DNA from: Macrostomum hystrix
Taxonomy: Eukaryota; Animalia; Platyhelminthes
Direction: 5' to 3'
NCBI GenBank assembly: GCA_950097015.1
Contig: CATNEN010000002.1
Span: 5,270,001 to 5,334,000, forward strand
DNA: 64,000 nt
Shown here in pieces: positions 7,511-61,420 of the stretch. The translations under genes were made by a program, and so were the position numbers. The stretch's first letter is position 1, and each line of letters opens with the position of its first letter. The notes below the pieces were generated by a model that was not told where the DNA came from, made no database searches, and saw nothing but the letters and a program-made list of their open reading frames with translations.

Positions 7511-7659
7511 GGGGACAATCAGACGACAGAATTTAAACAGATGCTGTCTACAGCGTGAAGTCCGAAAAATGTTTCTGCCAGTGTTGCTATGGCAACAAAA
7601 GTTCTCACATCGAGTCTGAGCCGAGGGTGTCCTTCACTGTTGCAGCTCGCGCAGGCACA

Positions 7660-26469
<18,810 letters not shown>

Positions 26470-28927: not shown

Positions 28928-31900
28928 ATGATGTTTGGCAGAGTGACCCTGTCATGCGGCCTGCTGCTGCTGCTGGCGGCCACAGGTCGAACCAGCCCCG
29001 TGGCCGATGGTGAGTGCTTGTCGAAACTATACATATGAGATAGCATATAGCATATGAGAACAGGCACATCAATTATTGACAGTGGACCACCAACCAGCAG
29101 CAACATGCAATTCCGCTATACCCACTGACTCCTGAGCGCACATGCCACAGATACTGTACGCTAGCTCACACTCACTCAGGTGTGTACATCTGCCCTGACT
29201 CTCTTATCGTCAGTCAGTGTTACACTTTCGCTTGGAGGTTGGCCCACAAATGAATGTGGCCTCGCCGCGGAATCGAGCTCAGAGTCTCAGTAGTCTCAGC
29301 AATTCAAAAAATTGTCAAGCGCTTCAGTAAAACTATAGGAGGGTGAAAACGGCCTAAAAATTATAGGTGTGATTTCTTCAATGAAATCCCATGAAATCTG
29401 ACTCTAATTTTTTGTTTAAACTGATTTCAGATGTCGAGACATCATATGTCACGGGTGAGTGAGTCTATCTAGTTTCGACTTGATCAGTAGGACTACCAAA
29501 CCATTTTGTGCCCGTTTTAATTACAAGGGAGGGATTTCCTCCCCCCAGAAAATATTTTACGCAGCGCCCGAATGCTAACTGCGTTGGGTGGTGACTGATT
29601 GGTTGACAGACTAGGCGATGGTGTCCTGTGGTTGAGCTGCGCCTAATATTTAGGCTTGAACAGTGAAATTGGAGAAATTCGCGTCAGGGTGTCCATAGTG
29701 GCCTATTTCCCCCCTGTTGTAGCCCTTGAAGGTTCAGCAGTCTGTCTAGATAAAAGTAGGTGACCACCGAAGACGGAGATGATGCAGGCACACTCGGGTG
29801 ACATGCTGATCAATTTTGAAGGCCTGGCAAGGCCGCACTGAGGCGCAGTGCAAATTTGTGCATAGGGGTGCATGAAATACACTAGCTCTTGTGGGAAATA
29901 TCTGACCTTCGGTTAGAACTGTTGAATATCTCGACGGTCAGAAGACCTGGTGATTTGATTACTGTTTCAGAAGATGCGCCACAAGAATGTGGCCCGTGTT
30001 GTTGAGTTTCGTGTGCTTGCGTTGCTACGTTCGCAAAAAAATCCGGTAGAACAGGTAGTTCTACTGTTAATACGAGCGTATTATTTTCTGTATAAAATAA
30101 ATATTCGTTGAACAATTTGTTTAGAACCGGAAGTCGTTGAGGAGAGGCCGGAAACTGTGGTGGACGAGAAGCCGGAGGTGAAAGAGGAGAATCTTCTCCT
30201 GCCGGAGGAAGAGACGGACAGCTCTGAGTCCGGCGAGGAGCTGGAAGACCCGAAGGGGACCTCGGAGGACCGTAAGTTTTGTTCGGCTCCGTTTAGTTCC
30301 GTTCTGAACTCGAAAAAGGATTTTTAACTGACAGAAACTCATTCCATGCAGTTGCCAAGCGGCTGGTCGTCGGTGGCGATGAAGGCTCCCTGCCGCCTCA
30401 GTTCAGAAGTGAGTTGATGGTGCAGTTATTCACCCAACAGTTCAAGCAACGAAAACTGACGACAGATTTGACAACACTGACTGACAACGAAAACTATTGA
30501 ACTTCCACCGCAACGCCTCCCCACAGAGATAGACTCTCTGTGCCTCATCTCTCCCGTGTCTCATCTCTCCCGTGTCTCATCTCTCATGTGCCTCATCTCT
30601 CCCGTGTCTCATCTCTCCACTGTCTCATCTCTCCCGTGTCTCATCTCTCATGTGCCTCATCTCTCCCGTGTCTCATCTCTCCCGTGTCTCATCTCTCCCG
30701 TGTCTTATCTCTCATGTGCCTCATCTCTCCCGCGTCTCATCTCTCCCATGTCTCATCTCCCCCGTGTCTCATCTCTCCCGTGTCTCATCTCTCCCGCGTC
30801 TCATCTATCCCGTGTCTCATCTCTACCGTGTCTCATCTCTCATGTGTCTCATCTCTCATGTGTCTCATCTCTACCGTGTCTCATCTCTCCCGTGTCTCAT
30901 CTCTACCGTGTCTCATCTCTCCCGTGTCTCATCTCTCCCGTGTCTCATCTCTCCCGTGTCTCATCTCTCCTGTTTCTCATCTCTCTTATATTGTAATTTT
31001 CAACGGATCAAAATTTTACTGTTTATTGTTGTTTTTGGACAATCTTTTAAATTAGATTAAACATGTAGTTAATATTTTACTAAGCAAGTAACTCGATTTT
31101 TCGTAATTTTCCAGATAAGCGCGGATATAGACGTCCCCCGATTGTTGGTGGAGATGTGCATTCACTGCCTCCAGGATACAGAAGTAATTTTTTTCTTATT
31201 TGCTCTACCAGAAACTTTGTTTGTAAGTAGCATAGAGACAATGTTCATGCGCAATTATTTTCAGAGATCTACATTAAATCGAAGACTGTCGGCGGACAGG
31301 TCAACCGCCCACTGCCCTACCGCCGTGAGTGAGATCATTTTTCCCATTTTTGCACTTTGAATGCAGCGTCAATACTACTATTAGTGGTCATTGGGTCTTC
31401 AACTAAACACAAAATAATATATTCCTAATGGTGAAGGATTTACTTAATGGTATTGATCAAGCATTAGCTGCATCCACACAGCCTTGCGAGTTAAGATCTA
31501 CGGTTGTACGAAGTCCACAATACCCGCGCTTCTGGTGGAGCTTGTAGCCTGATTCCTTTGGTTGGACACTACAGAAAAATAGTTACTCTACTCAGCAGAT
31601 CACCCTAAGGCCTCATGAAAATGCACCGATAGATGGCTTCATCGGCTGCTTCAAGGACAAGCGCTCAGACCGCGACCTGTTTAAGCTGGCGTACACTTCC
31701 AGCAGAAACACTGTTGACAAGTGCCGCAAGACCTGCGAGACACTGGGCTTCCACTACGCGGGCCTGCAGGGCGGTCGGCAATGCTTCTGCGGCAAGCGAT
31801 TCGGCACCCACGGCAGGGCCCAGTCCTGCAATCTGACCTGCTCAGGCAACAGGGCACAGAAATGCGGGGGCAGTCTGGCTAACAGTGTCTATCACAGCAG

Positions 31901-34900
31901 TGAGTTCATGCTCATGAACTGAATCGTCAAAACTGGTCAAAACTGGCATGCTGTGCTTCAGTCTCCTAGATTTCTTCCTCGTGCTCAATACACCGATTAA
32001 TTTTTTCCTTCTCTTGGTTCGGCAGACTTGTTAATATTATAAATAGTTTGCTAATTGATGGTGTTAGCAATGAGCACTTTGATCTCAATGTTGCAGGTGG
32101 TTTCCGCGCTGTCGGAGTTCACACCAGAATCGGCGGTAAGGGCCCGCTGCCACCGTGGTTTTCAAGTGAGTGCGATCCAGTTTTTGCGAAGTGTATTTAG
32201 AAACTTACTTCATGGACATTTCCAAGCAACTCAGCATTACAGGAAGCTAAAGATTTAGGCTTCATCAGGAATCAGGCCTTTAGAAATCTGAGCAATCTTT
32301 AGCAACAAGCTTTGAGCACTTTTTGGCTCTTAACAGTAGAAAGGGCACGCTATTTTCGCCCTGAGGAAAGACCCTGGGGAATTTCAAATAGCCACTGCCT
32401 ATACTTCCCCATAGCTCCCAAACCGAATCACCGACTTTCGTGAGAGTCCAACATATGCATCAACATTATCCGCCCTTAATTACGACGAACCAACTTTCAA
32501 AGCCGTCCGACGTCAGCATCGTCGAAATATTCAGAGATTCTTGTCGAAGACCCTGGTGACAAGGACAGCTAACATTTCTCTGTGCAAATCTATGGCGAAT
32601 CCGCGGCAATGTTCTACTTCCGTTCGTTATATTATTTTATTCGTTTGTATTCGTGCCACACGTGGATTCTGAGTTTGAAAAAAGTTGTGCTGACGTGGCT
32701 TTGCCGTGACTTGACACTTGGATCTATGTCTATGGCAAAATCTGGCAAATATGGGGGAACAGGAAGCTAAAGCGCAGAAATTCTGCAGCTGAAGATTTCG
32801 CGAAGGCCAAGCTGCGTCAAATGCATGGCACGAGTGCTGCTCTATTCGAAAGCCACCTCGAAGAATTCTTATGGCGCCGTCTATACCCCAAGAATAGCTT
32901 CGGTGCCCTCCTCTACTGGATTAGGCACTTACCCGGTTTGAGAGAAGAAAGACTGACCAAGACTTTTCAGAACTGTGTGACCAAACTACTGACTTTTTGC
33001 TACCGTTAAACTTGTTTTTTGTCGTTATCTGTCGTTTGCAAACAAAAAATAATATAACGAACGGAAGTACTCGTAGAACATTGCCAAATCCATTATTGGT
33101 TCAGCAATATAATAATTAGCAATAGTATCAACAGTAATAGCCGTCATGGTTGCATGATGACATTTTGTGAGTAGATAAGTTAGGCCTACATTGGTACTTT
33201 TGTCAATCGTTGAATCGTTGAATATTTCGAGGATGCCGATATTTTAGTGATTCTGGAAGCCGTTTCATCGGATAGAGCAGAACATTTTAGCCCGTGTTCT
33301 AAATTTTATGGCGATTGGTTGAATATTTTGTGGGATGCAGAAAAAGATAGGGGTATTTGAAATACCCCGCGGTCGTTTGTTCAAATCCAACCGGCTGTAA
33401 CGACGTCGCAATCGTCAATTTCACAATTCAGTCGGCAAGTCCAAGAACTCGCTGCCACCGCGCTACCGAGGTGAGACACGCGAACTAAATTGGTAAATAA
33501 GAATTGATAAGATTTAAGGATAGTCGCGAAGCTCAGCAAACGTACTTATATGAACCGCAGGAAAGCACTCCTTCAAGAAAATCCGCGTCGGAGGCGACAT
33601 CGGATCTCTGCCGCCGCAGTACAGGAGTGAGTCATACTACAAAAGCAGGTTTTCATACTTTACTAAGTATTATAACAAGTTTTTGAGGTTTAGCAACCAA
33701 TTAGATCTCCTAAACGACCTGCTACGTTTTTAATCGAATTACAGAGAAAAACAAGTTCATCCGAGTTGGAGGCGACATCGGATCTCTGCCGCCGCTGTAC
33801 AGGAGTAAGTCATACTACAAAAGCAGCTTTTCATACTTTACTAAGTATTATAACAAGTTTTTGAGGTTTAGCAACCAATTAGATCTCCTAAACGACCTGC
33901 TACGTTTTTTAATCGAATTACAGAGAAAAACAAGTTCATCCGCGTCGGAGGCGACATCGGATCTCTGCCGCCGCAGTACAGGAGTGAGTCATACTTAAAC
34001 AGTTGTTGTACTCAGTCACTTATGCTGTTTGTGATTGTTAATCCTTAAGGTTTTTGCAACCGGTTATACGAGCGTATTGTTCAATTACTTTCTGTTCAAT
34101 CGTGTTGCAGAGAAGCACAGGTTCATCCGAGTTGGAGGCGACATCGGATCTCTGCCGCCGCTGTACAGGAGTAAGTCATACTACAAAAGCAGCTTTTCAT
34201 ACTTTACTAAGTATTATAACAAGTTTTTGAGGTTTAGCAACCAATTAGATCTCCTAAACGACCTGCTACGTTTTTTAATCGAATTACAGAGAAAAACAAG
34301 TTCATCCGCGTCGGAGGCGACATCGGATCTCTGCCGCCGCAGTACAGGAGTGAGTCATACTTAAACAGTTGTTGTACTCAGTCACTTATGCTGTTTGTGA
34401 TTGTTAATCCATAAGGTTTTTGCAACCGGTTATATTGTTCAATTACTTTCTGTTCAATCGTGTTGCAGAGAAGCACAGGTTCATCCGAGTTGGAGGCGAC
34501 ATCGGATCTCTTCCACCCCAGTACAGGAGTGAGTCAGAAAACTCACTGAATGATTCATATATCTTGCAAGTTAAATTGTGCTGATGTCATAGCTCAGAAC
34601 GCAAAAAACGCGATTTCAGAGAAGCTCGTGTCACCACCAGGCTCCTCCAAGAGCTCCCTGCCACCTAAGTTCAGAAGTGAGTGAATTCCGCACCTTGATC
34701 CTAAACCCAACTCAATTCTTTTAATTTCTTCAAAACTTAAAGGGTAGCTTAATAAGTACCCTACCACTGTTAATAAAAACAGTAGAGTTAAAAAATTCCT
34801 TACTCAATCCATGTCGACTGCTAAAAAATAAATATAACAGTTCCAGGAGGGCTGCGGGCAATGGCACATCATTCGGTGACACTAGACCCGCAGCCAGCGA

Positions 34901-37900
34901 GGAGGCAATTCTGCCAATTCCGCTGACTCCTGAGCACACGTGCACACAGATACCGTACGCAGGCACACACTCACGCAGGTGTGTACATCTGCCCTGGCTT
35001 TTTCATCGTCAGGCAGTGTATACTTTCACTGTACTTTGGAGGTTGGCCCTCACGGGCGTAAATTGCACTACAGGCCCCCAAGCCTTCTCTCCGCGGCTGC
35101 GCCACAAACGAATGTCGTAGACGTAGATGCTGATGAATGCATTCAAGCCTCTAAGGGTCTGATAAGGCTCATGAAATTGTTCGACTTCCAGCTGGCAATT
35201 TTAAGGGGCCAAGCGTTCTACCAGGATCGACCGAGGGCTCCTTGCATCCGCGCTACCGCGGTGAGTGAGATGCGGCCTCCTGATCTTACCTCTTTGCTGC
35301 TCCTAAAGTTTGTAGATACAAAAACAACTCTAACTCGAGTCATTGGTTTTGCAGTTAACTTAAACCAAGGCTCCGATTAGCTTTGATTGCTAAAACATAA
35401 GAGCACAAATAACAAAGAGACACGTACTCACCTTGAACTGCAGGGAAGCTGCAAATTGTCAAGCACATCCGGGTCGGAGGCGACATCGGATCTCTGCCAC
35501 CGCAGTACAGGAGTGAGTCCTACTATGGTTGATACTCCGTCACATCATTCATGGTGTTATTTCTAGCTTTAGTTTATTACAGGGATAGTAAACGAAGATT
35601 CCCCTGTTTAATCACGTTGCAGAGAAGCACAAGTTTATCCGCATCGGTGGTCACAAGAGCGCCCTGCCGCCCAAGTTCAGAAGTGGGTACTTTTGGATTT
35701 GGACTGCTTTTTCACAATTTAGTTTAGCTCTTTTATGTATCCAAACTCTAAATGCATAACACATAAACTCAAGCGTTATGAGAAAACTAAAACTTCACAA
35801 ACTCCATACAACATGAGTAGCAGCTTTCTCGTGAATTCGTGGACAGGTAAATCCTAGAATAAAAGTGCATTGAGCGCGAAAATTGTTCCAAAATTTGTGG
35901 GCCCATAGAGTAGTTGCTCAAAAGACAAGCAGTCTCTCGCCTGGAGCCCTGTGTGGACAGATTAAAAATTGACGCTATCAACCAATGGGGCGGCTTGTAG
36001 CAACAGATAAGACTTGCATCCTGGAATGAAAGACTAAAATTTTGAATAAAAAATTATGACTTAACTTTTGATACCCAGTTGGCAAGTTGAAGAGGCCAAG
36101 TGTTCTACCAGGATCGACCAAGGGCTCATTGCATCCGCGCTACCGCGGTGAGTGAGAAGCAACCTGTCACTAAACATTTGCCTTATTTTACATTTTTAAT
36201 CCGTGAATTTATGGATTCGCTGATATATTCTATGACAAGTCGTGTCCTATAACTGAAAATTTTGTTTTAAAAAAAGTACAAAATCAACACACAAACCACA
36301 GGTAAGCACACTTTCAAGCACATCCGGGTCGGAGGCGACATCGGATCCCTGCCGCCTCAGTACAGGAGTGAGTCTTAGTTCATCTAGTTGTTGATACTCT
36401 GCAAAAAGTGCTTTTAAGGTTAACAGCCAATAACGACCAACAACCTGGGTGACTGGCAGAGCGGTTAACGCGTTTGCCCCTCGCACCAAGGTCCCTGAGC
36501 TCGATTACATGGCGAGGCCACATTCATTTGGGGTGCAGCCGCGGAGAGAAGGCTTGGGGGATTGTCGTGCAATTTACGCCCTCGAGGCCCAACCTCCAAT
36601 GTACAGTGAAAGTATACACTGCCTGATGATAAGAAAGGCAGGGCAGATGTACACACCTGCGTGAGTGTGTGCGTGCGTACATTCAGCGGAATGGGCAGAA
36701 TTGCCTCCTCGCTGGCTGCGGGTCTAGTGTCACCGAATGATGTGCCATTGCCCGCAGCCCTCCTGCAATTATTATTATTATTATTATTATTATCAATTAC
36801 AGAGAAAAACAAGTTCATCCGAGTTGGAGGCGACATCGGATCTCTTCCGCCGCAGTACAGGAGTGAGTCATACTTAAACAGTTGTTGTACTCAGTCACTT
36901 ATGCTGTTTGTGATTGTTAATCCATAAGGTTTTTGCAACCGGTTATATTGTTCAATTACTTTCTGTTCAATCGTGTTGCAGAGAAGCACAGGTTCATCCG
37001 AGTTGGAGGCGACATCGGATCTCTTCCACCCCAGTACAGGAGTGAGTCAAAAAACTCACTGAATGATTGATAATTATTGAAAATAAAACTATGCAGATGC
37101 CAGAATTGAAGACTCCAACATTTCAGAGAAGCTCGTGTCACCACCAGGCTCCTCCAAGAGCTCCCTGCCACCTAGGTTCAGAAGTGAGTGAATTCCGCAC
37201 CTTGATCCCTGTCTGATTGTTGACTAAGCCAATTCTCGACTACCTGTGGGACATATCTCTCTAATAGAAACATTAATTAAGATTCTATCTATGATGAGTT
37301 TGAACATGTTCTTGTGGTTAGACGTTATGGCTTCTATTGGTAAATGCTAGCCTCCAAGGAATTTTAAAAAGTTTATAAAAAATTGTTCGATTTCCAGTCA
37401 GGAAATTGAAGGGGCCAAGCGTTCTACCAGGATCGACCAAGGGCTCATTGCATCCGCGCTACCGAGGTGAGTGAGATGCAGCTTATTTATCTTACCTCTT
37501 TGCTGCACCTTGGGTTTCGATATTCATTTTGTTGCTGTCAAGACAAGTCCACGCTTCATTAACTCAAACCATTATTTATAAAAAAAACAAATCTCAGGAA
37601 AACACTCCTTTATGCACATCCGTGTCGGAGGTGACATCGGATCTCTGCCACCTCAGTACAGGAGTGAGTCATACTTGAAATGGATCATGTTTGAGAAGCA
37701 GCTGTTGATGCTCCATCACAGCGACAGCGAAGGTTATTGAAGCAGGGTTTGTTAACGAAGATTTTCCTGTTTAATATTGTTGCAGAGAAGCACAAGTTCA
37801 TCCGCATCGGTGGTCACAAGAGCGCCCTGCCGCCCCAATTCAGAAGTAAGAAAAGCTAATCACTGACCGAAAAATATTTACTTAAACTGTAATTGTGCCT

Positions 37901-40900
37901 ATGTCCTGACTTGGAGCCAAAAACACAATTTCAGAGAAGCTCGTGTCACCACCTGGCTCCTCCAAGAGTTCCCTGCCGCCTAGGTTCAGAAGTGAGCGGT
38001 TGCTCTGAATTAAAGTAATAATTTATATTTATATTGCCAAGGCCTTACTGAACTGGAAAGTGAATGTCAATGTAAGGCTCTAGAATAAGCCTGAGGTCAA
38101 TTCTCGAAACAAACCGACTGAACTCAGTAGCTGGTCGATACAATCGACAGGAAACGCCGAGGCATCTTCTTCCCATGGCGCCCTGGCGGAGGTTTGACCT
38201 GGACCTCCATTCTACTCGTAGAGCCTTAAGTTTGAATGTCCTTTGTTTTATTAGATTATAACTTCTGTGAAAATTATAATTTAAATGCACTTTCCTGCAC
38301 AAAAGCCTTGTTAAAAAATAGTTTTCTTAAAAAATTATGCTTGAATAAAGTTTTTTTGCTCTAGAAAAAACATAAGCAAAAACTGTTGCGTCCTAGATTT
38401 AGGAGTGAGTTCGCCTTGGCAATCATCTAGGCACATTTCAGCTGCACTCCAGTCAGCGACAATGCTTCTTGCAGGAGCCCTTGAAAATGAGAATTCGTTG
38501 GTACACCATTTCAGAGAAGCACAGGAAGGTCACGAGGCACATCCGGGTCGGAGGCAAGAGCTCCTTGCATCCTAGATTTAGGAGTGAGTTCGATTGGCAA
38601 TCATTGGCAGATCATAGCAAAAATGTCTTTCAATTATCCGTTTTCTATCGTAAGCAAGAACTTTTCGGTAAAGAAACTTCAGACTGGGCTGGTCAGTCAG
38701 ACTAAAACGGCAGGAAATTTACAATGCAATCGAAGAAAAAAGTTTCTTATTTAGACAAGACCGAATAGAAACGAGTTTTTAATGTGCAACGTAATTTTGA
38801 TTTACATTTTTTACTTTAAGTAACACAACTAAATTTTAACTGTCGCGTATAATTTCAAATTTCCCATCATATTTGGTTGCCCAATCACCTGATTCAATGT
38901 TACAAGCCCTTTGCACAGCTAATCCACAAAGCGACACCTGCTGATTTTACCTTTCAGACAAGCGCGGGCCAATTCTGGTTGGAGGAAGTGAGGGCTCCCT
39001 TCCACCACAGTACAGAAGTGAGTTTCCGAAATTTCCGAAAAATTCTCTGTTTTAGAAAGTACAACTAAAATGTTATCTTGAATGCGAATCACTTCAGAGA
39101 AAAATTGGAAGATCGTGAAGCACTTCAAGGTCGGAGGAAGTGAGGGCTCTCTGCCACCGCAGTACAGAAGTGAGTCGTTTTCGTATTCCCACTGCAATTT
39201 GATTTTAACGATTTGAAAAGCTGTAATAGTATATGATTATTTCTTAGGGGGCCGGTGGCAGAGCGGTTATCGCGTTTGCCTCTCGCACCAAGGTCCCTAA
39301 GTTCGATTCCGCGGCGAGGCCACATTTATTTGGGGCGCAGCCGCGCAGAGAAGGCTTGAGGGCTTGTCGTGCAATTTTACGCCCTTGAGGGCCAACCTCC
39401 AAGGCACAGTGAAGTGTACACTGTCTGACGATGACAAAGTCAGGGCATAGGTACACACCTGTGTGAGAATTGCCTCCTCGCTGGCTGCAGGTCTAGTGTC
39501 ACTAAGAGATGTGCCACTGCCCGCAGCCCTCCTGCAATTATTATTATTATTATTATTATGATTATTTCTTAAATGAAGAACTGAAATATTAGCCCAAATT
39601 CGACTTCGACTCACTTCAGAGAAAAACAGGAAGATCGTGAGGCACTTCAAGGTCGGAGGAAGTCAAGGCTCTCTGCCACCGCAGTACAGAAGTGAGATTT
39701 TTTAGATCTTTTTTAAATATACATGAAGACTGAAATGCAAAGTCGTTAACCTTGTTTCGCACGTGTTTATCAATCCAGAAAAGCACTTTTCGTTTGTGAG
39801 GCACTTCAAGGACGGAGGAAGTGAGGGCTCCCTTCCACCGCAGTACAGAAGTGAGTCGTTTTTTATTTCTAATTGCAATTTGATTTGAAAGATTCGAAAA
39901 GCGGCAATAATGTATGATTATTTTTCATGAAGTACTGAAATATTTCCCAAATTCTACTCACTTCAGAGAAGAACAGGAAGATCGTGAGGCACTTCACTGT
40001 CGGGGGAAGTGAGGGCTCTCTGCCACCGCAGTACAGAAGTGAGTCGTTTTAGTTTAAGGAATTATTTTTTACGAGAAAACTTGAAATATTTTATTTTATG
40101 CGACTCACTTCAGAGAAGAACAAGAAGATCGTGAGGCACTTCACGGTCGGAGGAAGTCAAGGCTCTCTGCCACCGCAGTACAGAAGTGAGTCGTTTTGTG
40201 ATCGTTGTATTCTTGCTACTTTTCGATATGAGCGCGCGATTCAAACTTTCTCAACAGAAAAGGAGTTGTTTACATTGAAAGCTATTTTTTCCTAAATCTG
40301 AATCATTTCAGAGAAGAACTGGAGGATCGTGAGACACTTCAAGGTCGGGGGAAGTGAGGGCTCTCTGCCACCTCAATACAGAAGTGAGTCTTTAGTTTAC
40401 TTACTGCATTTCCATTTGAACGATTTGTACAGTTGTACCAGTAGATTCTTGTTTTTGAAAAATAAAATATTATCTCGAAAACGAATCACTTCAGAGAAGA
40501 ACAGGAAGATCGTGAAGCATTTTAAGGTCGGGGGAAGTCAAGGCTCTCTGCCACCGCAGTACAGAAGTGAGATTTTATTTATTTTTCACACACACAACAC
40601 AGGAAGCCTGAAATTTAAATTTTAATGACCTTTCTCGCGTATTTATCAATCCAGAAAAGCACTTTTCGTTTGTGAGACACTTCAAGGTCGGAGGAAGTGA
40701 GGGCTCCCTGCCACCGCAGTACAGAAGTGAGTCGTTTCAAAACGTATAGTGTTCCAGCTGTATTCCAATTAAAACGGCGATCACAACAGTAGTATATTAT
40801 TTTTACATGCAAAGCAGAAAAGAGTTTCAAATACGACTCACTTCAGAGAAAAACAGGAAGATCGTGAGACACTTCAAGGTCGGAGGAAGTCAAGGCTCTC

Positions 40901-41471
40901 TGCCACCGCAGTACAGAAGTGAGTCGTTTTTTATTTCTAATTGCAATTTGATTTGAAAGATTCGAAAAGCGGAAATAATGTATGATTATTTTTCATGAAG
41001 TACTGAAATATTATCCCAAATTCTATACCCACTTCAGAGAAGAACAGGAAGATCGTGAGGCACATCACTGTCGGGGGAAGTGAGGGCTCTCTGCCACCGC
41101 AGTACAGAAGTGAGTCGTTATAGTATTTCGATTTTAGCAGTGACAACAGTTTAAGGAATTATTTTTTTTATAAAAACTGAAATATTATTTTTTATGCGAC
41201 TCACTTCAGAGAAGAATTTGAAGATCGTGAGGCACTTCAAGGTCGGAGGAAGTCAAGGCTCTCTGCCCCCGCAGTACAGAAGTGAGTTCATCTTGTTGGC
41301 GTTCTTTTAAGCAAATTTTTGAAGCACGCGATGTAAATACGAAATCTGACGAAAATGTCTTTACCTCAATAATATTCAGAACACCACATTGTGCTCAGCC
41401 ACGGACATAAATCTGTGAGACATCATGGAGTGAAGGCCGCTCCAGTTAGTCATCGACACACCACCAAGTAG
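28928..41471 (+). CDS. Secreted WSC-domain protein with 38 tandem micro-exon-encoded cationic Pro/Gly peptide repeats (putative polypeptide precursor), 43 exons
   Basis: Exons: 28928-29009 (signal peptide MMFGRVTLSCGLLLLLAATGRTS); 29431-29454; 30125-30271 (acidic); repeats 30352-30408, 31115-31183, 31265-31324; WSC 31633-31899; repeats 32097-32165, 33432-33470, 33561-33626, 33745-33804, 33924-33983, 34111-34170, 34290-34349, 34469-34528, 34620-34676, 35192-35260, 35444-35512, 35623-35682, 36079-36147, 36302-36367, 36803-36862, 36982-37041, 37127-37183, 37398-37466, 37598-37663, 37786-37845, 37935-37991, (38365-38404, 40 nt), 38515-38583, 38958-39017, 39098-39169, 39620-39691, 39779-39850, 39967-40038, 40114-40185, 40312-40383, 40495-40566, 40655-40726, 40847-40918, 41038-41109, 41210-41281; terminal 41380-41471 (TAG). 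Every exon has an AG acceptor and a GT donor (mostly GTGAG/GTAAG). All introns are phase 1 and internal exon lengths are multiples of 3 except the 40-nt one. Confidence 0.85.
29108..29285 (-). mobile_element. SINE family B partial copy in intron 1 of the micro-exon gene
   Basis: Reverse complement match to family B (ctgactcctgagc..caggtgtgtacatctgccctgac..ggaggttggccc..atgtggcctcgccgcggaatcgagctcag). Confidence 0.65.
30540..30990. repeat. 16-nt minisatellite (CCCGTGTCTCATCTCT); a related array lies at ~42400-42720
   Basis: Visible tandem units. Confidence 0.88.
31633..31899 (+). CDS. WSC (carbohydrate-binding) domain exon of the micro-exon gene
   Basis: GFIGCFKDKRSDRDLFKLAYTSSRNTVDKCRKTCETLGFHYAGLQGGRQCFCGKRFGTHGRAQSCNLTCSGNRAQKCGGSLANSVYH carries the WSC pattern GCF.D / C...C / YAGLQ.G.QCFCG / C...C.GN....CGG....SVY. 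The exon is 267 nt, phase 1-1. Confidence 0.88.
32790..32945 (+). mobile_element. Merlin/IS1595-like transposase C-terminal remnant
   Basis: Translates AKAKLRQMHGTSAALFESHLEEFLWRRLYPKNSFGALLYWIR, resembling the GT...F.SHL.EF.WRR C-terminal motif of Merlin transposases. No upstream catalytic ORF is seen. Confidence 0.45.
34843..35115 (-). mobile_element. SINE family B copy (lacking head), reverse orientation
   Basis: Reverse complement of the family B body (caggagggctgcgggcaatggcacatcattcggtgacactagacccgcagccagcgaggaggcaattctgcc...ggaggttggccc). Confidence 0.75.
36447..36792 (+). mobile_element. tRNA-derived SINE family B, full-length copy in a micro-exon gene intron
   Basis: 5' GG..TGGCAGAGCGGTTAACGCG (A box) and GAGCTCGATT.C (B box), a body shared with five other copies, a 3' hairpin GGCTGCGGGT..GCCCGCAGCC and a (TTA)n tail. 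Confidence 0.8.
39247..39557 (+). mobile_element. SINE family B copy with 14-bp target-site duplication
   Basis: Flanked by ATGATTATTTCTTA at 39233-39246 and 39558-39571. The paralogous intron near 39910 (tgtatgattatttttcatgaag) lacks the insert, i.e. an empty site. Confidence 0.85.
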
Positions 41472-43318: not shown

Positions 43319-46300
43319 TCAGTAAGCCCTAATCTTCGGGGGCACAGTCGGGCAGTCCTTCTGGTCCAGAGTCTTGTCAATGACCGGGCGATACTCCAGG
43401 CTTACTTTGCCAGTGGCGGCGTCCATGAAGCACAGGGTGTGCTTGCGCCAGTGCTGCTCGTATGGTCGCTTAGTCTGGCCATCGATGGGCTTAGTGTAGT
43501 CGTATTCGTCGATGCGATCCTTGAAGTCTTCGCGAGCGTGCGCACCGCGCGACTCCTTGCGAGCTTCGGCAGCGTACACGGTCTGGGGTGAAGGGTTCCG
43601 GGTGTAGGATGCAGGGTTTCGTATGTAGGGTGCAGGGTTCCGGGTGTAGGATGCAGGGTTTCGTATGTAGGGTGCAGGGTTCCGGGTGTAGGATGCAGGG
43701 TTTCGTATGTAGGGTGCAGGGTTTCGTATGTAGGGTGCAGGGTTTCGGATGTAGGGTGCAGGGTTCCGGTTTTCGGATTTAGGGTGCAGGGTTCCGGATG
43801 TAGGGTGCCGGTTTTCGGATTTAGGGTGCAGGGTTTTTCATGTTGGGTGCAGGGTTCCGGATGTAGGTTGCATGGTTTTAGAGGGAGGGCAAAGGGATTC
43901 GGAGCAGGGTGAAAGGTTTCGGATGTAGGGTGCAGGATTTCGGAGGTAGGGTGCCGGTTTTCGGATGTAGGGTGCAGGGTTCCGGATGTAGGGTGCAGGG
44001 TTCCGGATGTAGAGTGCAGGGTTCCGGATGTAGGGTGCAGGGTTCCGGATGTAGGGTGCAGGGTTCCGGATGTAGGGTGCAGGGTTTCGGATGTAGGGTG
44101 CCGATTTTCGGAAGTAGGGTTTCGAAATGTAGGGTTTTAAAGGTAGGTTCCAGAGTTATAGAGCTAGGGTGCAGGGTTTCGGATGTGGGGTGCGGGTTTT
44201 CAGAGGTAGGGTGCGGCTTTTCGGAGGTAGGGTGCAGGGTTCTAGATTTAGAGTGCAGGGTTCCGGGTGTGGGGTGCGGGTTTTCAGAGGTAGGGTGCGG
44301 CTTTTCGGAGGTAGGGTGCAGGGTTCTAGATTTAGAGTGCAGGGTTCCGGATGTAGAGTGCAGGGTTCCGGATGTAGAGTGCAGGGTTCCGGATGTAGAG
44401 TGCAGGGTTCCGGATGTAGGGTGCAGGGTTCCGGATGTAGAGTGCAGGGTTCGGGATGTAGGGTGCAGGGTTCCGGATGTAGGGTGCAGGGTTCCGGATG
44501 TAAGGGTGCAGGGTTCCGGATGTAGAGTGCAGGGTTCCGGATGTAGGGTGCAGGGTTCCGGATGTAGAGTGCAGGGTTCCGGATGTAGAGTGCAGGGTTC
44601 CGGATGTAGAGTGCAGGGTTCCGGATGTAGAGTGCAGGGTTCCGGATGTAGGGTGCAGGGTTCCGGATGTAGGGTGCAGGGTTCCGGATGTAAGGGTGCA
44701 GGGTTCCGGATGTAGAGTGCAGGGTTCCGGATGTAAGGGTGCAGGGTTCCGGGTGTAGGGTGCAGGGTTCCGGATGTAAGGGTGCAGGGTTCCGGATGTA
44801 GAGTGCAGGGTTCCGGATGTAGAGTGCAGGGTTCCGGATGTAAGGATGTAAGGCGGATAAATAAGAGTTTAAAAAGCCACAAACCTGCCCAGCATTCAGC
44901 ATGAGGTTCTGCAGTTCCAGAGTCTCAACCAAGTCCGAATTCCAGATCAGGCTCCGGTCCGTGACCTTCAGATCGTCCATCCGTTTGTAGACTTCGTCGA
45001 ACTCTCGGCAGCCGCGCAGCAGCGTCGGGCCGTCGCGGAAAACGGCGGCGTTGCGCTGCATGGCCTTCTGCAGGTCCAGCCGCAGCTCGGCGGTCGGCGT
45101 GCCGCCTTTGGCGTTACGCAGACGGTCGATGTTGGCCACGGAGGCTTCGCCGGAATCCTTGCGCAGCGGCGCCTGGGACTCGCCGGGCCGGTTCTCCTTG
45201 GCGATGGTGTGGGCGCAGGCGCGACCGAACACCACCAGGTCAAGAAGGGAGTTGGCGCCAAGCCTGTTGGCTCCGTGCACAGACACGCAGGCAGCCTCGC
45301 CAGCCGCGTACAGGCCTGGAATCACCACGTCCGAGCCGGTCTTCGGGTCGTAGGTAATGGCCTGCCGTTGAGGAATGCGTTTGGATGGGTGGTGTTCAGA
45401 AGCAATATCAAAATCTCACCTCATTCTACAGAATAGCTGCTTTAAAATCTTCAAAAGCTTAAAAATATTATTCAGTTCTACAGTATAGCTAATTTAAAAT
45501 CTTATCCCATAGTTGATTTAAAATCCCACCCTATAGCTAATTCAAAATCTCACACCATAGCTACTTTAAATCTCACACCATAGCTACTTTTAATCTCACC
45601 CCATAGCTACATCAAAATCTCACCATAGCTGATTCAAAATCTCACCATAGCTGATTCAAAATCTCATCCCATAGCTGATTCAAAATCTCATCCCATAGCT
45701 GATTCAAAATCTCACCATAGCTACATCAAAATCTCATCCCATAGCTGATTCAAAATCTCACCATGGCTACATCAAAATCTCATCCCATAGCTGATTCAAA
45801 ATCTCACCATAGCTGATTCAAAATCTCACCATAGCTACTTCAAAATCTCCCACAAAGCTACTTCAAAGTCTCACTCAAAGCTACTTTAACATCTCACCCA
45901 AAACTAATTCAAAATCTCACCATAGCTACTTCAAAATCTCCCACAAAGCTACTTCAAAGTCTCACTCAAAGCTACTTTAACATCTCACCCAAAACTAATT
46001 CAAAATCTCATCCCATAGCTACTTCAAAATCTCACCCAAAGTTAACTCAAAATCTCACTTATAGCTACGCTCGTATTTCAAAATTTTACCCCATAGCAAT
46101 TTCAAAATATAATCCCATGGCTATAATCTCAAAACATTCCATTTTTCAAAATTTCACTAGGATTCGCAGACCTAAGCAACGATGCGCATGCAAAGCCTCA
46201 CCTGGCCACGCCAGTTAGTGGGCACACCGCCCATGTTGTAGTGCACAGTGGGCAGTACAGGAATCGGTTCGCGAGTAACGTCAACTCCGGCAAAGATGTG

Positions 46301-48552
46301 AGCAGTCTCAGAGATGCCAGGCAAGCGGCTGCGCAGCTGCTCAGGTGGCAGGTGGTGCAGCTGCAGGAAGATGTGATCCTTTTCCTTGCCAACTCCGCGG
46401 CCCTCCCTAATCTCGATGGTCATGGCCCGAGAGACCACGTCGCGACTAGCCAGATCTTTGGCTACCGGCGCATATCGCTCCATGAATCTTTCACCTTCGC
46501 TGTTGACCAGATAGCCGCCCTCGCCGCGGCAGCCCTCGGTGATGAGACACCCAGCGCCATAGATGCCAGTGGGATGGAACTGGACAAATTCCATGTCCTG
46601 ATTAGGCAGGCCAGCGCGGCTTACCATGGCTGTGCCATCGCCAGTGCAGGTGTGAGCCGAGGTGCATGAGAAGTAGCACCGGCCATAGCCGCTGTGATTG
46701 GAGAAAATTATTTAGTAAGGAAAGAAATGACAACTGGACCAGATGTACAAGCAGTAGCATTGTACATATAAGGATATAACTAAATGATCAACTCTCAAAA
46801 ATGTACATTATTTGCACATCTTTATTATATTGTTACAACTACTTTTTGCAGATTTTAGAATGATAACTGAAAACAATGATCATACTCAAGTTATAATTTA
46901 TAGCTAACTATTATTGATCATTAATGGATTTAAGAAATACATGAGCCATAAAAATATAAAAATTGCAACTCATTAATCTGAAGGTAGCTTGTTGGTTATT
47001 TTAAGAATAGATAAGTATGTTTACTAGCTTACTAGCTAAAGTAAATAAAATAAATTCAGTTAATAACATAAAACTAGCCAAATACCAAAAAGTATTGAAT
47101 AAGCTAAAATAAATTAGTCCAATAATGATTTTAATTGCTGTTTTGTTATTAAAGGGTTCTATAAATTTAATGAAAAGCATTTTATTAAAGTATTCGAGAC
47201 CATAATAAGAGTTCATATGCCTTGATTTACATTTTTTGCATTTGAAATGAACTATTTATATAATGACATATAATTTAAAGTTTTTTATAGAAAGGCTTTA
47301 GCTATTGCTGCCTTTTAATCAGATACAATAGTGAAAAAAACATTGATTCAACCTGAACTTAATGTTAGCCTATCTATAGGCCTACCAATTGGCCAACTGA
47401 TTGTTTACCATATAGTTCAAATAGACAGTTACTGTCACTTTATAAAGATAACTAGTCTACCAAACACAACATTTTACTTTAGAGAGGTTATTGCTTCACA
47501 ACAATGAATAAAATAATATTTAATTCATTGGAACAACTAGTATACTGAAACATTATGTACACAAATGACAATTTTTAAAGTATTTCATATTTTTATAGTA
47601 TTTGTCATGACATTAATATAATATTTTATTGTTGTACATTAAGTAGTATAGGCCTATATGTAGCAATCATGAGCTATTTTAATGCAGAATAGGCCCCTAA
47701 TCACTTAAAAAATAGACTGCCTTGCTACCTAAATAAAAGATGTCTAGATTATATTTCAGTAGCAAATATTAGTAGATAGTAGCAAAAAGTGAGAAAATAA
47801 GCCTGAACAATATAATGACAAAATATAACTCCACTCCAGTTCACTCACCCTGTTGCTAGAACTGTATTCTTAGACTGAAACCTATGAAGAGTGCCATCTT
47901 CCAGGTTCAATGCAATAACACCCTTGCAAATGCCATCTTCGTAGAGGATGTCCAGGGCAAAGTACTCAACAAAATAGTCACAACCATACTTCAAGGACCT
48001 GCCATAGAGGGTGTGCAGCATAGAGTGGCCTGTTCGATCTGCCACTGCGCAGCAGCGATGTGCCTGGCCTCCTCTGCCATAGTCAATACTCTGGCCACCG
48101 AATGCACGCTGATAGATCTTGCCATTCTCCAGCCGACTAAATGGCATGCCATAGTTCTCCAGCTCAATCACAGCTTTTGGTGCTTGCTCGCACATGTAGT
48201 GAATTGCATCCTGATCACCAAGCCAATCTGAGCCCTTCACAGTGTCGTACATGTGGAATCGCCAGTCATCGGGCTCCATATTACCCAAGGCAGCATTAAT
48301 TCCACCTTGGGCGGCGACGGTGTGCGAACGCGTAGGAAAAAGTTTGGTTATGCAGGCTGTCTTGAAGCCTTCGTTGGCGAGTCCGAAAGCAGCTCGCAAG
48401 CCGGCGCCACCTGCGCCAACAACAACAGCATCGTAAACATGGTCAATTACAGGGTACTGCGAGGTTATTGAACTTGTGGTCGCATTGCGATGCAAGCGCT
48501 GGTTAAAGCCAGCAACATTGCGTAGTCTGGCAAGCCGCCCTAACTTCAGCAT
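43319..48552 (-). CDS. SDHA: Succinate dehydrogenase flavoprotein subunit, mitochondrial, 644 aa, 4 exons
   Basis: Exons (-) 48552-47849, 46691-46202, 45361-44885, 43582-43319; phases are compatible. Basic N-terminal transit peptide; [11 protein letters not shown]; FAD-His motif [12 protein letters not shown]; FVQFHPTG; [11 protein letters not shown]; [14 protein letters not shown]; [15 protein letters not shown]; ends PPKIRAY*. Confidence 0.97.
43588..44850. repeat. 21-nt minisatellite (GGGTGCAGGGTTCCGGATGTA) filling SDHA intron 3
   Basis: Visible tandem units between SDHA exons 3 and 4. Confidence 0.92.
45500..46130. repeat. 22/24-nt degenerate satellite (CCATAGCTGATTCAAAATCTCA) in SDHA intron 2
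   Basis: Visible tandem units. Confidence 0.8.
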
Positions 48553-50344
48553 CGCTTTATACAAAGAATGCCAGGAACACTGCAGTCCAACGAAGTCCAG
48601 CAGAGAAAGATTGAGTGAAATTAAACTTGATTATCAGCAAGTTTATATTTTATGTTTTCATTTTTTAACCAATGAAAAAGAATACTGTAATGCATATTTT
48701 TTAAGATTTTGTTACCTAACGATAATTTTTACGTAAAATTTTAACACAGGGTACAAATCAGTTTTTCAGCTGTATCTTTTGTTATATCATACTTTTACTC
48801 AAGTCGGCGTTTTAACGTATGTTTAAAATAATAGAGGTAGACCACTTCACTATATGCTTTCGTCAATATAAAGTTTCAAATACAATTACAAACCAACGAA
48901 ACACTATAAGCACAGCGTACACTGTAGTGTAGTGTACGCAGTAGTGTGCATGCCATAATTATATCGAATTTATTTACTTAATAGGATGCATTTTATACGA
49001 GTTTTCGGAGCATCTCGATCGCGATCTCAAGGACATTTCATATTTTTTATGTCGATGAAATGGCTGCAGGAAAATGCATGCATGTACTGAATATAAGTAA
49101 CACCCACAAGTCATAAAATCCGATCAGACTATATAGATGGAACCGTAATTGGAATTAAAGTTGACACTAAAGTTGCAGTCACTGCATACTAGAATCGAAG
49201 CTGCGGTACATAATTCCTAAGTTTATTCAACAATTAAATGCCACAAAATTAGGACGAAAAAATGTTATTCGACCATGCAAATACAATGACAGCATTTAGT
49301 CATAATTCCAATTCAAGGGCTATTGTCTATATTTATATTGAATGTTCAAATAATCTGGTCTGGATCACATTTCACTGATGATGCTCGCAAAGCCACTTTT
49401 TTATTGATGTTAGCTGCAGTTTTGAAATAGGATCTCCAAACCCCTAGATAATAAAATACATGTAAAATCAATGCAAAGTATTTACACGTGCTTCTATCTG
49501 AGGAAGAAGGCGAAAGCACCTATGTAAGATGACAATCCGAAAGGCAAACAGCATACCTTCTGCGGCCTCCTCTATCTCTGTTTCTCTCAGTCTCCGCGCG
49601 ATACTACTTGGAGTTCAGTCACGGATCGAAGGTCGTTGAGTGGACTCGAGGGCAGTGCGGGGTATGCTGGAGATCTCTCATTTGTTAATAGGGATCAAAG
49701 TCCTGACAAGTACTGAAGCCGCGATGAAGGGAAGATGAAGAGCCGCAGGTTTACTGTATTATATTAGGAGGCCACTAGAGAAATGATCAGCTTGATGGTT
49801 GTTAGATAACTCATTAAATCCGGCGAGATACTGATTGTATATGAACACGACTGCGTTGGGAAGCCCCGGCCGCGCTCCGCATTATACTGTACGTCCTTCC
49901 CTGGAGGATGAAGCGAAATCATTTCAGTTGCGTCGCCATTAGCGGTGTAGTCTAGCTGCGTGGTCTTGGGTGTCGACCTTCTATGCAGGAAAAGTGCATG
50001 GCTATCCAGCATTTATGCTCATGCATATCATGCCTTATGTGCCCGACCCAAATGTATTTCTAATTTATGGACGGGTGTCCGTTGGATGCATTGAAAGCCC
50101 TTGTCTATAAACAATCCATTCTCGGCTTTCTACCAATCCTAAGAACAGATGGCCAGCAGTTTGCACAACAACATGGCTTCAATTTTAAAGGATTTTCAAG
50201 TTTCATTTTTCATCTGCCACTTAGGAAAGGGTTGCCACTCGCTCAGTTCTGTTTAAAAAATTGGCTACAAAGCTTAAAAAACTCATCAGTTCAAAGCACT
50301 AAAACTTTTACGGAAACTTGTTGGTTGGTGACAGTGAAACTTAT

Positions 50345-57145: not shown

Positions 57146-58129
57146 GGAGATGAATATGTGAGTGTTAACGTGAGATTAAATTCTCCCAGTAAATAGTTGC
57201 GAGAGAAGTTACTGCTGCAGAAGTTCGTCAAGAATTTAGGACATTCATAAGTCACAAGAGTCCAGATCAAAACACTTTTAAGTACGAGTGACATGAACTC
57301 TGTGCATTAAATATTTAGACAGTCTCTGATTGCCTACTCTGTGCCAGGACTTTCCAGGAGATGCCTTGATCTTCTCAAAGGCATTGATGTGGTTTCATCT
57401 AAGCTGACAATTCTTTTAGGAGCAGACCACTGCATGGTTGAGCAGTCAGAAAGAGCAGAAATTTATCGGGCAAGCAGCCAAACTTACAGAATTCAAAAAG
57501 AATTCTTCTCAAACGTGCTTCACTTCAGACTGCCGGCCCCGAGGGTTCACAGCCGAGAGATCGATATTTGATACAGACGAGAAAACTTGCATGACCTTTG
57601 CTGGCAGAATAGACACAAAAGATAATTTAGCTCTCGGAAATGATTTCTAATGCAGCCCGACTGCCAGTTTGGGATTTTAGAATGGTCTGCCTTGACAACT
57701 GTCAGCTACTCAGCTACACAAAACTTATTGTTGCTCCAATAATTCGGCTAACCTTCTGTGAGTTCAGTTTGTATTATGACCATGCTCTCTTTAGTCTGAA
57801 ATACAACAGCAAATCACTAATATAATTCTAACAAACTAAATCAGCCCTTTCAGAGGTTTGAGTGACATTGCTTAGGGCAGCCATGTTCTTAATTCTAGTT
57901 GCCATAAAATTATAACAAAAGCAACTGTTTGTGGGTGAGCAGATTGCACTAAATCTGTTTAAGTACAGGCTTTGTATAAGAGTGAAACAAAGTCAGGTAT
58001 ACTGCAAAATATTGACAAATTGTGTCCCATGCAAAAAGCGACTGGTAATATATGGTCTGTACTGTCTGATTTTTAATTACCGCTCATTCGAATAACAGAG
58101 CAATATCTTAATTCTTCAAATATTTGATA

Positions 58130-61100: not shown

Positions 61101-61420
61101 ACACCAAAGAGTCCACATGGTTGATAGGACATCACACCAAAGAGTCCACATGGCTGATAGAACGTCACACCAAAGAGTCCACATGGCTGATAGAACATCA
61201 CACCAAAGAGTCCACATGGCTGATAGAACATCACACCAAAGAGTCCACATGGTTGATAGAACATCACACCAAAGAGTCCACATGGTTGATAGGACATCAC
61301 ACCAAAGAGTCCAAATAGTTGATAGGACATCACATCAAAGAGTCCAAATGGTTGATAGAACATCACACCAAAGAGTCCAAATGGTTGATAGAACATCACA
61401 CCAAAGAGTCCAAATAGTTA
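58130..61420. repeat. 33-nt minisatellite (CATCACACCAAAGAGTCCACATGGTTGATAGAA)
   Basis: About 3.3 kb of tandem units; a unit length divisible by 3 explains the long repetitive ORFs on both strands. Confidence 0.95.

Follow-up and report, generated by a model that had tools for sequence, protein, structure and literature searches.

Whether the residue formed where two exons meet can decide the fate of the peptide ahead of it is the question raised by a long array of short basic exons in Macrostomum hystrix (contig CATNEN010000002.1, positions 5,270,001 to 5,334,000; this stretch of 64,000 nucleotides is the window analysed). Every unit of the array is divided from the next within a codon, and an earlier note had proposed that the split codon selects between release and amidation. 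From the analysis described here the junction pattern is best read as an inherited repeat boundary, not as a switch for peptide release or amidation. The gene itself is that of a flatworm and probably encodes a secreted polycation of intrinsically repetitive build, with one WSC domain.

The gene and its protein

The gene model occupies 28928..41471 of the window on the + strand, as do all exons considered below, and is a single open frame from the ATG at 28928 to the stop codon at 41469-41471. With exon boundaries placed by GT-AG, reading frame and homology between repeats, the prediction is of 42 exons, a 3012-nt CDS and 1003 aa. Recomputed from the sequence, GT-AG is present at all 41 introns (median length 119 nt) and the internal exons are without exception phase 1-1, with lengths that are all multiples of 3 and, for 38 of the 40, between 24 and 72 nt. 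The encoded order is signal peptide, acidic 48-aa exon, WSC domain, 37 basic repeat exons and His-rich tail. Exon 1 (28928..29009) carries the start codon and a signal-peptide-like N-terminus, MMFGRVTLSCGLLLLLAATG..., in which a basic n-region and a 13-residue hydrophobic core are discernible by eye. The acidic segment is exon 3 (30125..30271), the net charge of exons 1-3 being -18, and L-A-K-R begins exon 4 right after it. The first repeat is in exon 4 (30352..30408), and the last exon (41380..41471) encodes the His-rich basic tail and the stop codon. For the whole predicted protein the net charge is +168 (120 K, 100 R), with G+S+P contributing 31%.

Exon 7 (31633..31899), a single phase 1-1 exon, encodes a complete WSC domain, of carbohydrate-binding type, with 8 Cys; it matches Pfam PF01822 over profile positions 1-82 of 82 at 70.2 bits (cut-off 27.8). 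With this exon as query a word search gave 0 candidate proteins, and an exhaustive protein search gave 7057 matches. Every one of the best 150 of these 7057 is a multi-WSC protein (2-23 matched stretches), and in none of those 150 is the repeat motif present, though a single-WSC orthologue scoring <140 bits would rank below them. Of M. lignano WSC proteins, the nearest that were found, P0002 and P0089, are likewise tandem multi-WSC and lack the repeats described here.

The 37 repeat exons encode 13-24 aa each, are basic, and share the core V-G-G-x-x-G-S-L-P-P-x-Y/F-R. Within a unit the N-terminal half is cationic (net +2 to +6); the other half is neutral, rich in G/S/P, and closes with S-L-P-P-x-Y/F-R, and it is the C-terminal S-L-P-P-x-Y/F-R-K that is the most conserved block. 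Interior dibasic pairs occur in 9 units of the array besides the boundary sites, and since basic residues are also spread over the N-terminal halves, they are not confined to the boundaries. A super-repeat, a-b-c(n)-d, is evident, with the a and b exon types forming its start and being copied as a block. The first a-b pair (33432..33626) has a truncated 39-nt copy of the a exon, and is followed at 33745..34676 by five c-type exons (KKN/HK/RFIRVGGDIGSLPPQ/LYR) and one d-type exon. Within this last stretch a 366-bp two-exon unit is present in 2.2 copies that are 96% identical, from which the array is taken to be still expanding. Further downstream, eleven 72-nt e-type exons (KKNRKIVRHFKVGGS[EQ]GSLPPQYR; 39098..41281) show a five-exon higher-order repeat.

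Across the repeat exons pN/pS is 0.13-0.49, pointing to purifying selection. For the e-type exons it is 0.32, with exon identity at 0.87 and intron identity at 0.46. Most introns of the array have diverged to random level, those between a/b exons and between e exons having an identity of 0.45-0.50 against a random baseline of 0.54. This is pertinent to the notion that the locus is non-functional, whether as an exon array in decay or as repetitive DNA in which a frame is open by chance. In its favor is that the repeats are without a matching database protein. A stop-free 59-aa stretch over the b exon 33561-33626 gave 0 candidates in a word search, and one of 107 aa over exons 36-37 gave 36 candidates with 0 significant, full-length relatives lying outside the length filter in both cases; a literature search on the repeat motifs yielded a single, unrelated match. 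Against it are 41 consecutive GT-AG introns and 1003 codons open with a start, signal peptide, intact WSC domain and stop, and the keeping of exons while introns were randomised, with pN/pS well under 1. The notion is extremely improbable.

Junction codons and the amidation question

An Arg codon plus one base ends 36 of the 37 repeat exons; the assertion that almost every repeat exon ends in this way thus stands with one exception, 32097-32165, which ends Ser+A. Recomputing exon ends and starts reproduced, for straight exon-to-exon splicing, the count of R-K-K at 24 junctions, formed by A+AG at 22 and by A+AA at 2, with the e-type exons all joined by Lys codons of these two kinds. At two junctions the product is R-N-K-R. 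One is where the final A of exon 4 meets the AT that begins the N-K-R-G... repeat of exon 5 (31115..31183; junction 30408/31115, residue 103), and the other, with A+AC, is between exons 29 and 30 (38515..39017; junction 38583/38958, residue 689). Both had been proposed as furin-type, and they do conform to that consensus; in the whole protein R-x-[KR]-R occurs only at residues 103-106 and 689-692, each spanning a junction.

A different outcome arises at the G-ending repeat exons, all four of which yield Y-R-G-K. These are the a exons 33432-33470, 35192-35260, 36079-36147 and 37398-37466, and their b partners are 33561-33626, 35444-35512, 36302-36367 and 37598-37663, starting with GA, GG, GT and GA respectively (pairs two to four thus occupy 35192..35512, 36079..36367 and 37398..37663). 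Gly is kept at the four a-b junctions despite the differing third base (A, G, T, A). The pairing of G-ending exons with Gly partners, claimed to hold four times in four, is indeed seen; what does not survive is its independence, as one a-b exon pair has been copied as a block and the four instances count as one event. The codon arithmetic for skipping of the partner is also right, G+AG specifying Glu. With all internal exons phase 1-1, skipping is always in frame and alters only the split-codon residue. Growth of the array from phase 1-1 exon-plus-intron units would place every repeat boundary in a split codon.

The claim that Y-R-G-K is amidation-like is not supported. At all four junction Gly residues the next residue after Y-R-G-K is H or L, so R-G-K is without a canonical Gly-dibasic amidation signal, and across the 1003-aa protein G[KR][KR] has one match only, at residue 200, which belongs to the WSC domain. 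The arrangement by which an amidated precursor is recognized, Gly plus a dibasic or Arg site at the peptide C-terminus, is therefore absent from these units. H-P-R-Y-R is the ending of the a exons, the intron lying inside the following Gly codon, and on the N-terminal side a-type units carry a single Arg only (F-R-T/I-G) and no dibasic site. Basic sites beside units are the 24 R-K-K and 2 R-N-K-R, the a-type having F-R-T/I only on the N-terminal side.

A processing- or amidation-type motif straddling a conserved intron does have a counterpart in NPY/NPF genes, where the Arg codon immediately ahead of the C-terminal Y/F-Gly-dibasic is interrupted by the intron (PMC2953531). There the order is R-x-R and, across the intron, Y/F-G-K-R, in a prohormone of <200 aa that gives one peptide. 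Here, in contrast, it is P-R-Y-R and, across an intron in the Gly codon, G-K-H/L, with no dibasic pair, in a 1003-aa repeat protein. The a exons lack the NPY/NPF C-terminal R-x-R-Y/F-Gly-dibasic with its intron in the Arg codon, and an NPY-like reading of d plus a exons was discarded, the motif being shifted by an extra Arg and the dibasic pair absent.

Alternative uses of the boundaries

What would be made of these boundaries by splicing is one consideration. It could be envisaged that the phase 1-1 exons are spliced alternatively and the junction residue is set in this way, and with it release (R-K-K, R-N-K-R), amidation (R-G-K) or neither (R-E-K). The symmetry of the exons, by which each skip would be in frame with change to the split codon only, is congenial to this, as is the constancy of Gly at the a-b junctions. 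So too is an interspersed element in intron 16 (34824..35115) that is inverted relative to a copy in intron 21 (36520-36785): the two are complementary over 161 nt at 91% and 103 nt at 93%, bracket exons 17-21, and as an inverted pair could promote skipping of what lies between (ARAGORN found no tRNA in the intronic element). However, the a-b pairing is that of one duplicated block, at a divergence of ~0.2-0.4 per site it is no surprise that four copies have kept two bases, and G at donor -1 and acceptor +1 is favored by splicing itself. Moreover, G-K-H/L is monobasic Lys, a poor context for amidation, and donors are near-uniform GTGAGT and uniformly strong, so that a and b exons are not set apart as regulated. 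Such a switch is very unlikely. Its fuller form, a splice-programmable polyprotein in which exon order sets Lys, Asn, Gly, Glu, Arg or Ser and hence the fate of a unit (release, amidation or retention in the polymer), is highly improbable, though if true one gene would yield tissue- or state-specific peptide cocktails. The junction-codon idea follows from the phase 1-1 repeat architecture, and would gain importance only with isoform and peptide data in which exon choice is seen to be regulated.

Cleavage regardless of splicing has more to commend it, but is still unlikely. Convertases would cut most R-K-K and R-N-K-R boundaries and a carboxypeptidase would trim the products, giving ~30 related peptides of 17-22 residues, with antimicrobial, pheromone-like, seminal or neuro-endocrine roles and the WSC domain as a carrier or sorting module. 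Suggestive of this are the signal peptide, the acidic pro-region and K-R ahead of the first unit; the tribasic R-K-K is strictly periodic at 24 boundaries with the furin-type consensus at 2 more, unit length is peptide-typical, S-L-P-P-x-Y/F-R-K, the most conserved part of the unit, abuts the basic site, and purifying selection is on every unit. Yet planarian prohormones were recognized by a signal sequence, flanking basic cleavage sites, a length of <200 aa and membership of no other annotated class (PMC2953531). The signal sequence is present in exon 1, as judged by eye, but with 1003 aa and a folded WSC domain scoring 70 bits the protein departs from two of these features. In addition, R-K and K-K are weak as convertase sites; the supposed peptides would be fragmented at the interior dibasic pairs of nine units, a-type units have no dibasic site on the N-terminal side, and a Gly-dibasic signal is absent outside the WSC domain. 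The fallback offered in the earlier note, a repeat polymer that stays intact, has the better support.

A probable secreted polycationic polymer

Probably, then, this is a flatworm gene for a gland-secreted polycationic repeat polymer, perhaps cut at two furin-type sites. The repeat array would have grown by tandem duplication of phase 1-1 exon-plus-intron units, and the boundary residue, usually Lys, Gly at a-b and Asn before K-R, would be part of the inherited, selected repeat sequence. The mature product may act mainly as a polymer in a gland secretion, where it would bind, or turn into a gel, material that is glycan or negatively charged, with proteolysis, if any, presumably at K-R88 and the two R-N-K-R sites rather than at every junction.

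Several known systems are instructive for such a polymer. All tropoelastin splice sites are phase 1:1 and its exons are removable cassette-like without frame shift (PMC12554196). This feature is common to tropoelastin (ELN) and the 42-exon model, and ELN is also a secreted, basic, Gly/Pro/Val-rich repeat polymer with the junction residue in a split codon. There is, however, no sequence relationship, elastin is without a WSC domain, and its hydrophobic exons alternate with Lys cross-linking ones, a cationic and a neutral half being combined here in each exon; cross-linking of the flatworm protein is conjecture. Among flatworm genes, the Schistosoma micro-exon genes (MEGs) are comparable, and exon skipping is known to vary their proteins (bioRxiv 10.1101/2023.06.21.545858). 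They too encode secreted proteins, and in both cases a signal-peptide exon is followed by many exons that are short and symmetric (3-81 bp for MEGs). The comparison is one of architecture: MEG exons are mostly much shorter than those here, which are of 57-72 nt, their introns are long (up to 5 kb, against a median of 119 nt here), and MEG products are small, not tandem-repetitive and lack WSC.

Motif likenesses of two other kinds were set aside. PPxY as a WW-domain ligand was rejected, the protein being secretory. For a DOPA-type adhesive, the likeness to mussel PPTYK-like motifs is a resemblance only.

Macrostomum itself provides further parallels. The M. lignano adhesive protein Mlig-ap1 is 5407 aa. 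Its Lys/Arg-rich regions bind negatively charged sugars (PMC6410801), and it too is a secreted, Lys/Arg-rich flatworm gland protein, gland origin being putative in the present case. It differs in having C-type lectin, vWD, C8, TIL and EGF modules (PMC6410801) and a far more extreme charge. Among annotated prostate-limited transcripts of M. lignano, WSC-type best matches predominate (PMC5977470 Table S1; PMC6953679; PMC4490696), though secretion and WSC are the only features that these candidates have in common with this gene. For the source of the secretion, prostate and seminal fluid are the best guess, one drawn solely from that M. lignano base rate, with egg cement or another adhesive as the alternative.

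If the polymer reading is true, duplication of one phase 1-1 mini-exon would have generated a complete, compact, taxon-restricted secreted protein, with selection visible on every copy and one duplication very recent. For a flatworm genus in which glue and seminal-fluid proteins are actively studied, it would be an added design, WSC plus polycation, and the gene would be worth examining by in situ hybridisation and RNAi.

The predicted gene and its surroundings

The repeat exons were located through their recurring donor context, an Arg codon plus one base followed by GTGAGT, and from each donor the frame was walked upstream to an AG acceptor, after which the model was extended to a full gene. 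The predicted repeat gene runs on the + strand from an ATG at 28928 to a stop at 41469-41471 in 42 exons, with introns that are GT-AG in 41 of 41 cases and internal exons that are all phase 1-1 and always a multiple of three in length; its coding sequence of 3012 nt specifies 1003 amino acids. Exon 1 encodes a signal-peptide-like N-terminus, exon 3 an acidic segment of 48 residues, exon 7 (31633-31899) a complete WSC domain (PF01822, full profile, 70.2 bits against a cut-off of 27.8), exons 4-6 and 8-41 the 37 basic repeat units, each 13-24 residues long, and exon 42 a basic, His-rich tail. With 120 K, 100 R and 46 H to 52 D+E, the predicted protein has a net charge of +168 and a computed pI of ~11.2, G, S and P making up 31% of it. 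In a six-frame scan the L-P-P-x-Y/F-R motif of the repeats is confined to model exons.

The neighbors are housekeeping genes. Upstream, also on the + strand, are REV3/DNA polymerase zeta-like exons (7555-8004, 11932-13518 and 23384-23902; Pfam REV3_N, DNA_pol_B_exo1 and DNA_pol_B), with large minisatellite arrays between them, and downstream on the - strand lie two exons of an SDHA-like flavoprotein (46175-48564; FAD_binding_2, E-values 2e-41 and 3e-55). The window is unusually minisatellite-dense, with 61 TRF rows and arrays of up to 3.4 kb (e.g. 14039-16217, 17870-21271, 58124-61419), and intron 4 of the repeat gene carries a 16-mer repeated 28 times (30540-30985).

Junction codons and the history of the array

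Arg plus one base ends 36 of the 37 repeat exons, and the codon split by the junction (last base of one exon | first two of the next) gives R-K-K at 24 junctions (22 A|AG, 2 A|AA), R-N-K-R at 30408/31115 (A|AT) and 38583/38958 (A|AC), and R-G-K after 33470, 35260, 36147 and 37466 (G|GA, G|GG, G|GT and G|GA, respectively), a recount in agreement with the 24, two and four of the earlier note. The furin-type consensus that it recognized at both R-N-K-R junctions holds, these being the sole matches to R-x-[KR]-R in the whole protein, and under the genetic code a splice from a G-ending exon to one starting AG would indeed give Glu; from an A-ending exon to a type b exon, which starts GA, GG or GT, it would give Arg or Ser. 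The G/G pairing, described as holding four times out of four, does yield Gly at all four junctions, but these are not four independent pairings. Exon types recur as a super-repeat a-b-c(n)-d, four times over, type a reading ...GSLHPRYR plus G and type b G-K-H-x-F-x-x-IRVGGDIGSLPPQYR; in the alignment the G/G junction is therefore one exon pair, block-copied three times. Eleven e-type exons of 72 nt, with their own five-exon periodicity, follow the four super-repeats.

The array copies are not young. Identity among a-b introns and among e-type introns is 0.45-0.50 against a baseline of 0.54, which is the random level; since the repeat exons retain 87-94% identity beside introns so randomized, with pN/pS of 0.13-0.49 across every exon class, the peptide sequence of each unit, junction residues included, is under purifying selection. 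That this is no functional gene at all is scarcely credible. Retention of G-G in four copies with a variable third base fits general constraint, and fits also a splice-site preference for G at those positions; it is no evidence that Gly in particular serves as a signal. The junction regularity is real, and is a consequence of the gene's build by duplication.

A 366-bp two-exon unit, exons and introns together, is present in 2.2 copies at 96% identity (33742-34536), a sign that the array is still growing. An exon pair was thus duplicated very recently, which suggests that copy number varies among individuals. Separately, at 38380-38410, ~130 nt upstream of the true exon 29, lies an incomplete and degenerate copy of the 3′ end of that exon (…CGTCCTAGATTTAGGAGTGAGTTCG), which looks like the remnant of an exon duplication that was aborted or has decayed.

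Splicing, processing and the predicted product

The mechanism put forward in the earlier note, that alternative splicing could set which peptides are made and whether they are released or amidated, is possible but unsupported, and we consider it very improbable. Donors are nearly all GTGAGT, 33 of the 41 having A at -1, the acceptors too are uniform, and introns have a median length of 119 nt; among the donors, acceptors and introns of the repeat gene no regulatory mark on a or b exons was seen. Four introns contain a SINE-like interspersed element of ~300 nt (34824-35115, 36520-36785, 29155-29220 and 39466-39554), in which ARAGORN called no tRNA. Those of introns 16 and 21 lie in inverted orientation to one another (264 nt, 91-93% complementary) and bracket exons 17-21, which the pair could, in principle, loop out, favoring in-frame skipping or back-splicing.

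Full processing of a polyprotein precursor is a more serious, though still unlikely, alternative. The predicted signal peptide, an acidic pro-region with K-R directly behind it, tribasic sites at regular period, two furin-type sites and units of peptide size speak for it; against it are the length of 1003 aa, a folded WSC domain with eight cysteines, dibasic sites inside units, and a units whose N-terminal side is F-R-T/I-G, without a dibasic site. A Gly-dibasic signal is lacking as well: the supposed amidation-like R-G-K is not borne out, as K-H or K-L comes after each junction Gly, and a whole-protein motif scan found G[KR][KR] only inside the WSC domain and not at boundaries. In NPY/NPF genes a processing and amidation signal does straddle a conserved intron, in the Arg codon before Y/F-G-K-R (PMC2953531), a motif different from the P-R-Y-R|G-K-H/L of the repeat gene. 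Planarian prohormone criteria comprise a signal sequence, flanking basic sites, a length of <200 aa and dissimilarity to other gene classes (PMC2953531), and the predicted protein departs from the last two.

When all units are aligned from their right ends, a nearly invariant core emerges, V-G-G-x-x-G-S-L-P-P-x-Y/F-R and then Lys; in exon types b, c and e, the commoner ones, the core has a neutral or slightly acidic character. The N-terminal half of each unit has net charge +2 to +6 and, additional to the boundaries, nine units have interior dibasic pairs, so that positive charge is spread along the chain and does not serve as punctuation between neutral peptides. The product would probably be a polycationic repeat polymer that is secreted and perhaps undergoes limited cleavage of the furin type.

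Relatives and precedents

A word search of proteins with the WSC exon gave no match, and an exhaustive search gave 7057 WSC proteins, the best 150 of which are all multi-WSC and in none of which the repeats occur; among the listed matches are two M. lignano UniRef entries, P0002 and P0089, both tandem-WSC. No relatives emerged from searches with stop-free genomic stretches, one over a b exon and one over two e exons. Homology searches were run exon by exon, with a length filter and summed-domain-score ranking, and their blanks are compatible with existing orthologues.

WSC-type best hits dominate annotated prostate-limited putative seminal-fluid transcripts in M. lignano (PMC5977470 Table S1; PMC6953679; PMC4490696), and its adhesive protein Mlig-ap1 acts through Lys/Arg-rich regions, which bind negatively charged sugars (PMC6410801). 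The closest architectural precedent is tropoelastin, whose genes are all phase 1:1, allowing cassette-like exon removal (PMC12554196). Schistosome micro-exon genes, with secreted proteins from short symmetric exons, are the flatworm precedent. The repeat gene is an apparently undescribed member of a familiar class, that of taxon-restricted, secreted repeat proteins that arose through duplication of phase 1-1 exons.
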